Of a DNA stretch of 64,000 bases, positions 41,246 to 64,000 are shown piece by piece (the stretch's first letter is position 1; each line of letters begins with the position of its first letter). A model generated the notes under the pieces. The model searched no databases. It was not told the DNA's origin and saw only the letters and a list, made by a program, of their open reading frames with translations. The stretch covers positions 26,288,001 through 26,352,000 of the forward strand of contig OZ241830.1 in assembly GCA_965202585.1 (NCBI GenBank), read 5' to 3'. This stretch comes from Thalia democratica (taxonomy: Eukaryota). Both the position numbers and the translations under genes were made by a program.

Positions 41246-44200
41246 ATGTTTGGTTCAAAAGAACGAATCTCACAATTGAAATTTATCAATGAAAAAGGTT
41301 ATAATATGCAGCGAATCAACAAAATTCGAAACAAAAATCCTCATAAGAAAGTTATGAAGAAAAAAGCTACGAATGAATCTACTTGTAAATTTAAACCAGT
41401 GGATCAGTTAAACGAAGGAAAGGAAAATAATAATAAAAATACAGGTTTTTTGTGTTGTTCTACTTACTACAGAGTAAATATAAAACTAAATATGCAGGTA
41501 AAAGACTTAAGCGCTTTACATTTTATTGTTTTTGATTTAAAAAAAGTTAGACAAATTAATTTAGATGTCATATCATTATTTTATTTTATTAGTATATGTG
41601 AGAATCTTTTATTAAAACTAAAGTGATTTTAGAGAATTTTTTAAAATCTTAAATTATTAATTTTAATTGTAAAAACCATAAAGTTTTTTTACAAGTTACG
41701 AATTAAACTAATCAAAACGGATTAAACATTCTATAATTAACTTTAAAAAAACATTTTTCTTTTAAAGAGTTATATGTTAACGTATGCTGCAATATTTTTA
41801 TATAGTTCTAAATTTTTCAAACAGACAGCAATTTTGACTCAAAAGAGGTGCAAAATTTAGTTCAACTTTTGATGAAACGAAAATGCGAACTACAAGCGTT
41901 GACGTTTTGGAACGATAAACTTCTGAACCAACTTAAGCATATGAGTAAGTTTTTAAAAGAAAAAAATCTTAGCAGCATTATATGTTTAAAAGTTTGAAAA
42001 AAGTATAAGAGAATTAAAATTTAAGATCTTTGGTAACAACGATTTAAAACTAAACTTGTAAAATTAAGCTTTTTTTTTCATATATAAATATGCATTATAT
42101 ATTTAAAAAAAATATATATTAAAAAAACTTAAAAATAAGTTTTAAATTTTATATAAGTAAATTCTTAGTATTAAATGTTTCAAGTAATAAAAAAAATGAA
42201 TTATAACAGCACAATCTGGAATTCCTGTTCTCGACCCAACCAAGCTAATAAAATATAATCAAATTAACTCAAATAAACACGACAAATTGCCACAAGAAAC
42301 AGTTGACTTGCAACAAAAAGTGAACGAGTTGCAAAAAGCACCAGTAAGTTCTACAACTTACTCAATATTTGTATCAAAGTTTGAACCCACAATTAAACAA
42401 ACCAATAGCGCATTCTAGCGGTTATTTTCATAAACAAAACGCAAATAACCAACAAGCTCTTGTGAAGCAGGCTGGTGCATCAGCACTGAAAAGTAGCCAG
42501 TATCCCACACAACAAGCTGCTCATGCTCAAAAATCATTTGAGTCAAGTCAAGTTCCACGTAAGTTGAATAAAGTGTTTTATATATTTATGCGTATTTTGA
42601 AAGTTTTCGAAGTAAAATTTTGTACTGTATTCTTACTATAATCAGTTTCATATTAAAAAGATAAAGCTACGATATACTTACTTAATAATGTGTGATGTTG
42701 TACTTTCTTTTACTATAAACTCTCAGAAGGTAATCAAATTACAGTTTTAATTAACAATGAAAGACTCAAAACAGCATTAATTAGAATATTTTTTTTTATT
42801 ATCTTAAATATGTTATTTAAAACCTATGGTGTAATTTCCAATGATTGGTGTTAGTGGTTTTGTGAAATTCCATGAAACTTAAAATGTTTGCTAACGTTGT
42901 TATAATTTGTTGTAAGCTTTGCTATTATTTCATATGTAGGTAGAAGTAATTATGTTGCTGAAAGTCCAACTTCAGCTGACAAAACAATTCCTGCTCAACT
43001 TTTTGTCAACTCAAAAGTTCACAAACATCAACAACCATTGAATCAGACTTTACAGCAGAATGCGGGAAAGTTGTTTCCGTTGCTACAGAAACAAATTGCT
43101 GAAAAAAGCGGATTGTACAAACTACATAACTTTTGTTAGTTTCCTCAAGTAAGCATTATCGCCCATCAAGGCTCGTTTTCGTCTGTCAGGAAGTACTAAT
43201 TAGTAAGGCGGTGAAAAAGTTAATAAGTAGATTAGTATTAAAAAGGCCATATTGAAAAAACGTTTCGTTTTTTTTAATTTCTGCCAAAGTAGCGTTTATT
43301 AAAAAAAGTTTGGGGCACCCTGAACTAGATGGGGACTTGTCAAATACGCACGGAGACGCTTTTGCTCGAAAGATCCTTTTGCTAGGGAGTGAAAATAATT
43401 ACAATTATAATTAGAAAGTTATATAAAAGACAAATTACCGACTAAGAGTAAGGGTTAGGTGAAACAGTTATAGTAAAAAAGTAAAATTAAATTAAAAAAA
43501 CAAAATTTTGACCTGTGCGAGGTGTCTTCGCGCAAAAGTGCTCATTTAAAAGTGACCCTTCGTGCGAAATTAACGCCGTTTTAAAATTGTCTTTGAACAA
43601 AAATTACCCTTCGTGTAAAAGTGACTTTTGTGCGAAAGTGTCTATGTGCAAAAAAGTGTTAGTGCACAAGTGACCTAACACTTGTATGCATACTTGACTT
43701 ATACCCGTAGTAAATAGACAAATGGTTGTAAACTTATTTAAGCATGTTAATAATAAAGTTTACTGCGTTGTTATTACATATTGTTCGTTTTATAACGCTG
43801 TTAAAAAGTGTTTGTTAATTTAAATACGATTAATTATTGATAACTGAAGTCTTTTGAAGTGTTAGTTTAGCTATTTTGTACAATAAGATTTTAAGTGTGC
43901 TGTAAAAAAAAAACTTTCTAAAATATTTATTTAAACTTGTGTATTTTGTTTTGTTTGAACACTGATTTAATAGATGATATATTGTTTATTTATGTTTTTT
44001 TTTGTTTTGCAAACAGTTCACCAATACAACGTTAACAACAGTTTGATAAACTTAACGAAAAACAAGCTTAAATATCTGGAAAAGAAGTTCATTGATTTCA
44101 GTTTTTACTTGACTGAACAAGAACGTAATTGTCTGGCTAATAATATCAATGTTGATGAAAAAATTGTAAGTTGATGTTAAATATTTTAATATACTGTGCG

Positions 44201-44675
44201 GTTAAACAAATACTTAAAACTATTTGTTTTAAATTAATTCTTACTAGAACTGGTTTTAGTTGTTTATATCTTTAGTAAACATAAAATACTGACTTTTAAA
44301 TGATCTTTGTTCAAAGTTTTTAGTGTTTATAACTTCTATTACTTTTTAATAAATGAAATCGAATGCTCGGAAACAATGGCCTTATAAACAAACCAAATAT
44401 TACAAGCAGTGTTTTGCAATGTAAAATAAATAAAAAGTTAATCTACAGCACTTAGTAAACTACAACTTTTAATGTTCATCCTATTTAACTTTAATGTTTT
44501 ATATTTCATTTTCATTTTGTAAATAAAACTTAAAATTTAGGTAGAGTTGTGGTTTGAACTGAGAAGAAATAATCTACCGAAAAATCCTGAGTTTAACATC
44601 AATGGATTTTTAGCTGAAAAACAAAAAGAATGCCAAGCAAGACAGAAAATACAGAACAAAATAGCTTTAAATTAA
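41246..44675 (+). CDS. Q/N-rich protein with a C-terminal highly divergent homeodomain
   Basis: Exons 41246-41444, 41825-41944, 42210-about 42343/42347, about 42409-42559, 42940-43134, 44017-44165, 44541-44675. The last two encode LTKNKLKYLEKKFIDFSFYLTEQERNCLANNINVDEKI|VELWFELRR, matching homeodomain L/F8, L13, L16, F20, Y25, L26, R31, L34, A35, E42, V45, W48, F49, R52, R53. The exon 3/4 junction has a phase problem. Confidence 0.8.
43200..43322. mobile_element. Truncated hAT element end in a homeobox-gene intron
   Basis: Ends in AAAAGTTTGGGGCACCCTG (hAT-type TIR, related to the 3792 terminus), followed by AACTAGAT; no left TIR found. Confidence 0.5.
43331..43681. mobile_element. Degenerate foldback MITE of the TGCACG/CGTGCA-array family
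   Basis: Starts GGGGAC; left GCACGG/GCTCGA units; central CCGACTAAGAGTAAGGGTTAGG core; right arm of about 17-bp (T)CGTGCAAAA-like units. Same family as 60525-61226, in the opposite orientation. Confidence 0.65.
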
Positions 44676-60524: not shown

Positions 60525-61226
60525 TTTGCACGAGCGTACAAAGTTGCACGAGGGGACAAAATTGCACAAGGTCACAAAATAGCATGAACACACTTTTGCA
60601 CGAAGGGTAACTTTTGCACGGGCAGACAATTTTGCACGGAGGTATTTAAAAAAAAACTTAACAATATTTTTTTTTAATTATTTAAATTTTTTTATTATCT
60701 ATCACTGTTACTCCTAAACCTTACCCTCGGTCAGTACTTAGAAATTTTTTTATTAATATTTTTTTTTTACTTTTACTGTTACCCCTAACTTTTACCCTCG
60801 GTCGGTAGTTTTTTTTCTTTTTAATTAACATTTATATATTCATTCTTTTTTTTTTATATAAAAAATTGTTAGCTGTTTTTTAATTTTTTTTACTACCACT
60901 ATTACCCCTAACCCTTTCTCTCGGTCTCCAACTTTTTATTTTTTAGTTTATTTTTCTGTTTTGTATATAATTTTTTTTACTCTCGTGCAAAAATGACCGT
61001 CCGTGCAAAACTGTAACTCGTGCAAAATTGACTCTTGGTACAAAATTGTCTTCGAGCAATTTTGTCCCTTCGTGTAAATTTGTCTTCGTGCAAAAGTATC
61101 ATTGTGCAATTTTGTGCCCTCGTGTAATTTAGTCTTCGTGCAATTTAGTCCCCTCGTGCAATAAAGTAGCCTCGTGAAATTTTATCTTCGTGCAATTTTG
61201 TCTTCGTCCAATTTAGTCCTGTTCCC
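60525..61226. mobile_element. Foldback MITE with inverted arrays of about 17-18-bp TTGCACGA / TCGTGCAA units
   Basis: About 7 TTGCACGA units (60525-60645), three central CCCTAAC...CCCTCGGTC repeats (about 60710-60930), about 14 TCGTGCAA units (60980-61220), terminus CCTGTTCCC. Confidence 0.8.
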
Positions 61227-62561: not shown

Positions 62562-64000
62562 ATGATGGCAACAACGAACTGCTTTGACCCACTTCTAGCA
62601 GCAGGAAACAGTTTTATGACCAACCAACCGTTAACTTCCGGAATAAGTCAACCGTGTAAGATATATGACGTCACAAATCAACAAAACTTTTCAGCTACAA
62701 ATGGTCATTACATTAATGGTAACACATTGAATTTTTCGAACGGTATAATAGATTATTCGTTGTTAAATTCGGATTTCAATGACAATCAGGTTTGATTTGG
62801 TATAAAAAACTTATAAACAGCTACTAAATTAAATAGAATTTATTGAAATTTATTTTATTGAATATATTTTTCTCTTCGGATTTAGGGTGTAGCCTTAAAA
62901 AAACAATAGTGACCTCATATAAATATATTAAAAAAGGCTTCTTATAAAATTGTAATAAAAATAACGAACTGTTTTATAAACTTTATCAAGTTTTATAATG
63001 AAAATTTCGTTAATCTTTCTAGGTAGCTGTACAAACTGCTATCAACGCAGGCAAAATTCATCAAAATCTGCAGCTGCAAAGCTTCCAGCAATACCTACCT
63101 GCAATAGGGAACCCAGAAAGTAGAGCAAACTACCAGCAAATTACTTTAGCCAACACTCACAAGTCAGTGCAAAATGACTATCAAACACAACAAAAGAACA
63201 ATCTTGCTGTTGTTAACCAACAACAAATGCAGATGTTCCAGCAAAATGTTAATGACAAGTGTTACAACACAAGTTCTGTACAAAATCAAAATGTCAACCT
63301 AGGACTTGGGCAACATCAGTTTGCACAACAACCACAAATACAACAAGGTCAGCAGCATATTCCGTTGGTTCAAAATAACCAAACAAATACATTTTTGTTG
63401 AGTTTTATTCTTGAAAAACTAAAAAGTGTAACCTTATTTATTCTAACAGATCAAAAAAAAAGATATCCTCAGCAATACTTAATGCCACGAACTCACTCAC
63501 TTCATCAAACCAACGTGCAGAATAATGCTGGTATGAGCTTACACTTGAATTTTAAATTAGTATCTAAAAATTATTTATTTGCTTTTGTTAACAGACCTGA
63601 TAGCTGTACAACATAGTGGTGACCCTTTGCTAGTAAACAACAGACGAAAGGTAATAAAACAGACAGTTTTGTATTTAACTGGGAAATCGATCATTTTTAT
63701 GTACAAACTTTTTTTTTAGATTAGTGAAGCTGTGCTTTCAAGCTCAAACATTAAGAATTTTAATTTTGAATCATCTGACGGTGAAAGACCAGGACAGTAA
63801 GGATGTTTTATTTCTTAGAGCATTTACGACTTCTAGTAAATATACTCATTAACTCTAATATATAAAACTTTTATTTTTTATTAGAACAAAAATAAAGAGA
63901 GTAAAAAGTTTTGTATTATTTTTTTACAAACATGCGCATCAAATTTGAAATATGTTATAACTCCTTTTAGGACTCGTGTGAAATTTACAAGACTGCAGTT
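62562..64000 (+). CDS. Q-rich protein, probable homeobox transcription factor, truncated by the window end
   Basis: Phase-consistent exons 62562-62789, 63023-63530 (may contain a short intron), 63595-63650, 63720-63796, 63971 to end. The spliced end reads ...SSDGERPGQ-TRVKFTRLQ(L/F), matching homeodomain N-terminal arm and helix 1 positions R5, F8, T9, Q12, L13. The rest of the domain lies outside the window. Confidence 0.7.

Follow-up and report, generated by a model that had tools for sequence, protein, structure and literature searches.

A tunicate gene with two homeodomains and its dispersed, lineage-specific family

We analysed a stretch of 64,000 nucleotides of Thalia democratica (contig OZ241830.1, here C6, positions 26,288,001-26,352,000; this whole stretch is called the window below), which has a GC content of ~25% throughout and ends inside a homeobox gene that we call gene A. 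Gene A occupies C6:26,350,562-26,354,472 on the + strand and consists of 11 exons, all with AG/GT borders, which join into a single frame of 1359 nt encoding 452 aa. The ATG, the 452 open codons and the 20 splice sites, all of them canonical, are in place. The window holds the 5' two-thirds of the gene and its boundary cuts it; the exons past 64000 were read from the adjoining C6 sequence and are listed in extrapolated window coordinates (Table 1). Window numbering is used throughout, and the genome position on C6 is obtained by adding 26,288,000. The predicted protein starts with a conserved N-terminal motif, continues with ~250 Q/N-rich residues and then carries a first homeodomain (HD1, residues 254-313), a basic/acidic linker of 61 residues, a second homeodomain (HD2, residues 375-435) and a tail of 17 residues. 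We consider it very probable that gene A is an intact tunicate gene for a protein with two homeodomains, which we propose to be a transcription factor.

Table 1. Exons of gene A in window coordinates, and its four close paralogs in genome coordinates.
Feature	Position	Strand	Remarks
Gene A, exon 1	62562..62789	+	ATG at 62562, 76 codons, frame open up to the GT donor
Gene A, exon 2 (Q/N-rich region)	63023..63347	+	AG/GT borders, phase 0 to 1; homologous exons in B, C, D and E
Gene A, exon 3 (Q-rich, ...RYPQQ...)	63450..63530	+	preceding intron 102 nt
Gene A, exon 4 (DLIAVQHSG...)	63595..63650	+	56 nt, size and phase shared by A, B and D
Gene A, exon 5	63720..63796	+	77 nt in all paralogs, phase 0 to 2; ends CA/gt
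Gene A, exon 6 (start of HD1)	63971..64100 (first 30 nt inside the window)	+	AG acceptor upstream; Pfam Homeodomain E=1.6e-7
Gene A, exon 7 (HD1 helix 3)	64259-64337	+	opens NWFNNKRSKLIR, begins NWFNNKRSK
Gene A, exon 8	64432-64472	+	AG/GT borders, in frame
Gene A, exon 9	64759-64871	+	AG/GT borders, in frame
Gene A, exon 10 (HD2 positions 1-46)	65313-65445	+	Pfam Homeodomain E=6.8e-5, exon scored alone
Gene A, exon 11 (HD2 helix 3 and tail)	66377-66472	+	TGA stop
Copy B	C6:26,389,122-26,385,399	-	intact, 452 aa, 11 exons and phases as in A
Copy C	C6:23,472,389-23,478,011		B-like, 85-97% nt across exons, three frameshifts
Copy D	C1:98,029,103-98,025,791	-	intact, 447 aa, 11 exons and phases as in A
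Copy E	C1450:13,255-16,623 (19-kb unplaced contig)		D-like; two compensating 1-bp indels in exon 1

Exon 1 encodes the conserved motif DPLL...SFMTNQPLTS...YDVT and is 71-74% identical on the amino acid level to exon 1 of the paralogs B and C; the motif recurs in three mRNA-derived environmental proteins, P0001, P0023 and P0024. The intron before exon 3 would leave the frame of gene A open if it were retained. In B, however, this intron has 101 nt and its retention would shift the frame, so that we regard it as a real intron. A preliminary description of the window had reported a long Q/N-rich stretch ahead of a homeodomain, and Q and N indeed make up 29% of the 253 residues N-terminal to HD1. 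It had also read the last exon, beginning at 63971, as spliced in phase to the CA/G donor upstream (63796/63797, CA/gtaagg) and as encoding a homeodomain start TRVKFTRLQ(L/F) with R5, F8 and Q12. We find the same: the CA at the end of exon 5 opens the Q codon that precedes HD1, and the joined sequence reads Q-T-R-V-K-F-T-R-L-Q-F. The ambiguous final residue is F, its codon TTT being completed by the first two bases after the window, and reading on completes HD1. L16, F20, W48, F49 and helices 2-3, which that description had named as the features to look for past 64000, are all found. The expected architecture of a Q-rich N-terminus with a C-terminal homeodomain is correct in the Q/N-richness and in the C-terminal placement, but the protein contains two homeodomains and not one. 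Finally, a loose likeness of the homeodomain start to a nearby CTCGTG repeat unit had been pointed out. Non-coding tandem repeats do sit ~1.3-2 kb 5' of the start codon, at 60526-61219 (16-18-bp units of the TCGTGCAA type in both orientations, together with a 71-bp repeat), with the CTCGTG tandem repeat at 60982-61219; the likeness is nevertheless coincidental, because exon 6 is conserved with 92-97% nt identity in the paralogs at other loci.

HD1 is encoded by exon 6, which ends ...EILEASFKKSQNLKNGRKLFISEMTGLTENQVV/gtaagt at 64100, and by exon 7. It has R5, F8, Q12, L16, F20, W48, F49, N51 and R53, so that all seven core and DNA-contact residues (R5, L16, F20, W48, F49, N51, R53) are present. 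Its recognition helix carries N47, N50, N51, K52, R53 and S54, of which N47/N50 form an unusual pair. HD2 lies wholly past the window end and is encoded by exons 10 and 11 (QRITLNFDQLEILEDFYNFTSWYPMVDQIEKLAKRSKLSCYEVK/NWFQNRRRKNRK). This domain has 61 residues, one of which is an insertion between helix 1 and the YP turn (44 residues against 43 profile positions). It holds R5, L16, F/Y at 19-20 next to the one-residue insertion, N47, W48, F49, Q50, N51, R52, R53 and R54. Both homeodomains retain the residues that hold the fold and those that contact DNA, and they are 29% identical to each other. When the first exons alone are scored with the Pfam Homeodomain profile (PF00046; curated cut-off 22.9 bits), HD1 reaches 31.4 bits and HD2 23.0 bits, while the full-length relatives P0001 and P0024 reach 80-88 bits, with two stretches each. 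The Pfam scan of the gene A exons and of the full-length relatives gave no domain besides Homeodomain.

Both homeoboxes are interrupted by a phase 0 intron between codons 46 and 47, QVV/NWF in HD1 and EVK/NWF in HD2, and the same is seen in all paralogs examined. Of 33 PRD-class genes in Nematostella, 31 have an intron at this position (homeobox nucleotide 139), which has been taken as ancestral for the class (PMC1779571). The 46/47 intron is a hallmark of the PRD (paired/paired-like) class, and both gene A homeoboxes have it. Against solved structures, the single homeodomain exons of gene A give weak matches only (E 0.4-0.9). With the relative P0001, HD2 is matched best by DUX4 HD2, Paired, PRRX2, Aristaless, ALX4, HESX1 and Goosecoid; the matches of HD1 are mixed (Engrailed, HOXB13, BARHL2, DUX4 HD1 and Aristaless).

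Searches of the genome on the DNA and protein level, followed by modelling on gene A, furnished four close paralogs, copies B-E (Table 1). Copy B lies tail to tail with gene A, 31 kb beyond its stop. A, B and D do not differ in their recognition helices, and their exons 7-9 keep the phases without a stop, with identical sizes of 41 nt and 113 nt. The frame of copy C is broken in three places: exon 2 contains a tandem duplication of 4 bp, a T-run in the HD2 exon has gained a T, and the last exon has lost an A. Copy C also has much longer introns 8 (904 nt) and 9 (1948 nt), and its two homeodomain exons are 97-98% identical to those of A but 93-96% to those of B. Copy C is probably a young pseudogene. 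For copy E we consider three possible origins: a divergent haplotype, an error in the assembly, or a duplicate that is decaying.

We then compared the intact copies by the ratio of nonsynonymous to synonymous substitution rates (dN/dS, NG86). Between A and B the ratio is 0.39 overall, 0.19 in HD1 and 0.13 in HD2; between A and D it is 0.30, 0.16 and 0.13, and between B and D 0.24, 0.13 and 0.13. The linker gives 0.22-0.58, and the A-B comparison outside the homeodomains 0.44. The constraint is strongest in the homeodomains and in the tail after HD2; for the homeodomains the interval is 0.07-0.36, and 0 of 300 codon bootstraps reached 1. Gene A and copy B are separated by a dS of 0.49 at ~80% identity, and the frame of gene A is still open. 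Unconstrained copies decay fast here, because copy C, with 85-97% nt identity to B, is already broken three times. Judged by these pairwise ratios, gene A has been under purifying selection.

For the whole genome we searched with two profiles, one made from the first exon of HD2 (A1) and one from the first exon of HD1 (A2). A locus was counted as a member of the family when it combined an HD1-type exon (xR[VIA]KFTRxQ...TGLT) with an HD2-type exon of 44 codons ([KQ]RIxLxFDQ...W[YF]P...) that lies 1-3.5 kb further downstream on the same strand. Profile A2 gave 17 matches, 14 of which are located 1-3.5 kb 5' of an A1 match on the same strand. These 14 paired loci are distributed over C6 (three: A, B and C), C1 (two), C1450 (one), C2 (six), C7 (one) and C5 (one), and gene A is among the top matches of both profiles (26,351,972-26,352,100 for A2 and 26,353,314-26,353,445 for A1). 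Even the distant loci at C1:92.44 Mb, C2:56.83, 77.46 and 78.31 Mb and C7:13.97 Mb show the order HD1 then HD2, the 46/47 introns, the N-terminal motif and the tail as in A. This tail, G-[IFV]-E-[IVM]-[NS]-K (G-x-E-x-N-K), is common to A, B, D, P0001, P0023 and P0024 in the alignment. In a tree built from both first exons, A-E are grouped as a separate clade with 98/97 support, on a long branch.

Profile A1 alone gave at least 103 matches, at least 45 of which cover the full 44 residues. Most stand in arrays on C2 (11.5-14.5 and 62.5-63.2 Mb), C4 (15.8-17.0 and 29.06-29.73 Mb) and C7 (35.3-35.5 and 44.8-45.0 Mb), whose members are 7-20 kb apart and without an HD1-type partner. By these profile matches, the 61-residue HD2 type appears to belong to a much larger paired-like homeobox expansion characterized by the one-residue insertion. 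Because only 14 of more than 100 HD2-type exons have an HD1-type partner, the 14-locus family is a distinct dispersed subset, and it constitutes an undescribed, lineage-specific double-homeodomain family. Elsewhere on C6, between 40,105,549 and 40,195,790, there are three identical weak HD1-type matches (33 bits) in open frames of 158-257 aa, without an HD2 partner; they may represent another homeobox family in local triplication.

Outside this genome, 18 matches were obtained when 1.84 billion representative proteins were searched with a profile, and P0001 (435 aa) was the sole full-length relative among them. A word-indexed search of 5.8 billion proteins added P0023 and P0024 and nothing else; none of the three is named. 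All three (433-445 aa) come from JGI sample 3300018893, and each combines, in a single frame, the N-terminal motif with HD1, HD2 and the tail. Their contigs (L015, L029 and L030) are 1.35-1.54 kb long and intron-less, have 3' UTRs (untranslated regions) and are ~86% identical to one another, and in all three a conserved 5' leader (...aaggtcttgaatttaaacaatc) directly precedes the ATG. The P0001 contig matches the exons of the loci at C1:92.44 Mb and C2:56.83 Mb block by block with 71-86% nt identity, and the block ends coincide with the predicted splice junctions. The three contigs read as mRNAs of three paralogs from a related marine species, which suggests that several members of the family are co-expressed there. 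Because these mRNA-like contigs hold HD1 and HD2 in a single frame, both homeodomains are part of one spliced transcript in this family. Marine metagenome contigs, one of them from Tara Oceans (PRJEB4352), contain an HD2 exon like that of the A subfamily (77% nt). Among the weak matches to the HD2 profile are P0007-P0017 (ENA, Logan assemblies; contigs up to 2.1 Mb), proteins of other eukaryotes with 212-1051 aa and 2-12 homeodomain-like repeats, for which no name is recorded.

The preliminary description had further suggested that gene A and a Q-rich gene 18 kb upstream (41246-44675) are old duplicates, one having kept and the other having lost the residues that contact DNA. Both genes are indeed on the + strand, their N-terminal parts are of low complexity and their C-terminal homeodomains are interrupted by an intron, and a local homeodomain hidden Markov model run over 152 kb (C6:26,268,001-26,420,000) detects three homeobox genes only, namely these two and copy B. 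The upstream gene does contain a homeodomain (44019-44165 and 44541 onward), though a weak one (Pfam 20.2 bits). It is the only one in that gene, in contrast to the two of gene A, and its intron is placed between codons 44 and 45 (...DEKI/VELWFELRR) and not between 46 and 47. Its identity amounts to 20% with HD1 and 25% with HD2, which is the level of unrelated homeodomains and lies below the identity of HD1 to HD2. With the gene A protein, tblastn gave no match at E<0.01 in the 41-45 kb region. A whole-genome search with the upstream homeodomain exon gave weak matches on C7 (best), C4, C8 and C175 and none at the 14 double-homeodomain loci, and in the reverse direction neither the gene A paralog searches nor the profiles A1 and A2 returned the upstream gene. 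The two genes are linked by proximity and strand alone, and we consider it extremely improbable that they are duplicates of each other. The broader idea of homeobox relatives nearby was right, the true paralog being copy B on the opposite strand.

We find it hardly credible that our model wrongly merges two neighbouring single-homeobox genes, one for HD1 and one for HD2. It is true that exons 7-9, which join the two domains, are short and weakly conserved, as the dN/dS of the linker indicates, and that the runs matching the locus are genomic; but the conserved sizes and phases of these exons and their freedom from stops in A, B and D, the continuous frame of the relatives' mRNA-like contigs and the HD1-then-HD2 order retained at 14 loci all speak for one gene, and an independent ATG-initiated frame is not needed. 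More weight has to be given to the possibility that gene A has fallen silent or died recently and that B, D or other members carry the function. The family undergoes birth and death, as copy C with its three frameshifts and copy E with its two indels in exon 1 illustrate; the identical recognition helices make A, B and D possibly redundant, the A-B ratio outside the homeodomains is fairly high, and the runs that match gene A are genomic only. We nevertheless judge a dead gene A unlikely, because its open codons, ATG and splice sites have all been kept at this dS from B, while copy C is already broken, and because the interval of the homeodomain dN/dS rules out neutrality.

Several observations weigh against an intact double-homeodomain transcription factor gene, which we nonetheless prefer. 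HD1 is very divergent, its first exon alone giving E 0.5-0.9 against solved homeodomains, and N50 and K52 are atypical among homeodomains. An AlphaFold2 model of P0001:245-435 has three helices per domain at the expected places, but with low confidence (mean pLDDT, the predicted local distance difference test, of 50 from an alignment of 3 sequences). The pairwise dN/dS leaves room for a very recent loss of function in A. The mRNA-like contigs belong neither to this organism nor to the branch of the family that contains gene A, and that the JGI sample is a metatranscriptome we infer from the structure of the contigs. The sequencing runs matching the gene A locus (two runs from one sample) gave short genomic contigs across the introns and no splice joints at the predicted introns. 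The joints that did occur in these runs are repeat artefacts with non-canonical ends and 21-letter sides. Finally, DNA binding, recognition of a bipartite site and activation by the gene A protein would follow by analogy with known families.

For the intact gene that we favour, the DUX genes (DUX4, DUXA, DUXB, DUXC and mouse Dux) are a close parallel in layout. They too have two paired-like homeodomains in one polypeptide, and both families are multicopy with birth-and-death turnover. DUX4 HD1 is among the top matches for HD1 of P0001, and DUX4 HD2 is the best solved match for its HD2, although the margin over Paired (34 vs 31 bits) is too small for a specific kinship. In the intron-containing DUX genes, each homeobox is split at the position equivalent to that in gene A (PMC3004920). 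The differences are considerable. The homeodomains of gene A are located at 254-435 of 452 behind a Q/N-rich region, whereas those of DUX are N-terminal. Its linker has 61 residues compared to ~15-20 between the homeodomains in solved DUX4 chains, and the 17 residues after HD2 leave no room for a C-terminal domain of the DUX4 type. In addition, HD2 has the extra residue and HD1 has N47/N50. DUX genes are reported to be restricted to eutherians, where they derive from the single-homeobox sDUX (PMC3004920, PMC9882399). On this account, the double layout in tunicates must be of independent origin. A literature search gave no report of double homeobox genes in tunicates or salps.

The mammalian ETCHbox (Argfx/Dprx/Leutx/Tprx), Obox, Rhox and Crxos genes resemble the gene A family in their divergent paired-like homeodomains and their rapid duplication and loss, and we know of no orthologs of them beyond a narrow lineage. 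They mostly have one homeodomain, together with documented expression in the early embryo, while the gene A family has two. More than one homeodomain per protein, as in gene A, is also found in ZFHX, ZHX/HOMEZ, HDX and amphioxus Mux, but these are ancient conserved families of other homeodomain classes with additional zinc fingers or domains.

By analogy with these known families, the gene A product would be a sequence-specific transcription factor. Like those of DUX4, its two paired-like homeodomains may bind two neighbouring TAAT-like half-sites on a single DNA molecule, and the Q/N-rich N-terminus could serve as an activating or condensate-forming part. The N47/N50/S54 set of HD1 would probably give a half-site preference unlike that of HD2 with its Q50. 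One may speculate further that pelagic tunicates invented a DUX-like regulator independently: a fast-turnover family with a prion-like Q/N region and a brief role in the germline or early embryo (zygotic genome activation or salp embryogenesis, for example), in which the N47/N50 HD1 of A-E acquired a new half-site specificity. We regard this scenario as rather improbable in its entirety.

The double paired-like homeodomain has been treated in the literature as a eutherian invention, represented by DUX, and a second origin in the sister group of the vertebrates would be a natural replicate. The replicate shares the intron-split homeoboxes and the birth-and-death dynamics, and it could shed light on the reasons for which tandem homeodomains evolve and on the sites that they recognize. 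The family is missing from annotated proteomes, where the 5.8 billion proteins searched hold only the three anonymous environmental ones, and it adds to the evidence for very large unannotated homeobox expansions in this pelagic tunicate genome. For annotation, gene A requires the 11-exon model, as it spans the window boundary.

The tunicate nature of the host is also evident from its mitochondrial DNA. In the intact COX1 (contig C1833), the universally conserved motifs GGFGN, DPxGGGDP and FFGHPEVY appear only when AGA/AGG (32 codons) are translated as Gly. Reading AGA/AGG as Gly is the ascidian mitochondrial code, which is used throughout the tunicates (PMC7047913). Because the COX1 motifs need this code, the host is a tunicate. 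A cnidarian (Hydra-like) source, which the GC content of ~25% might suggest, is rejected by the same code. The GH6 domain of cellulose synthase (PF01341) is of no use as a tunicate marker here, as its profile matched neither this genome nor the control genomes. Stop-riddled COX1-like fragments are also present on nuclear contigs, at C4:56,844,236-56,944,224 and C757:31,294-32,138; those on C4 are apparently several mitochondrial insertions within ~100 kb.

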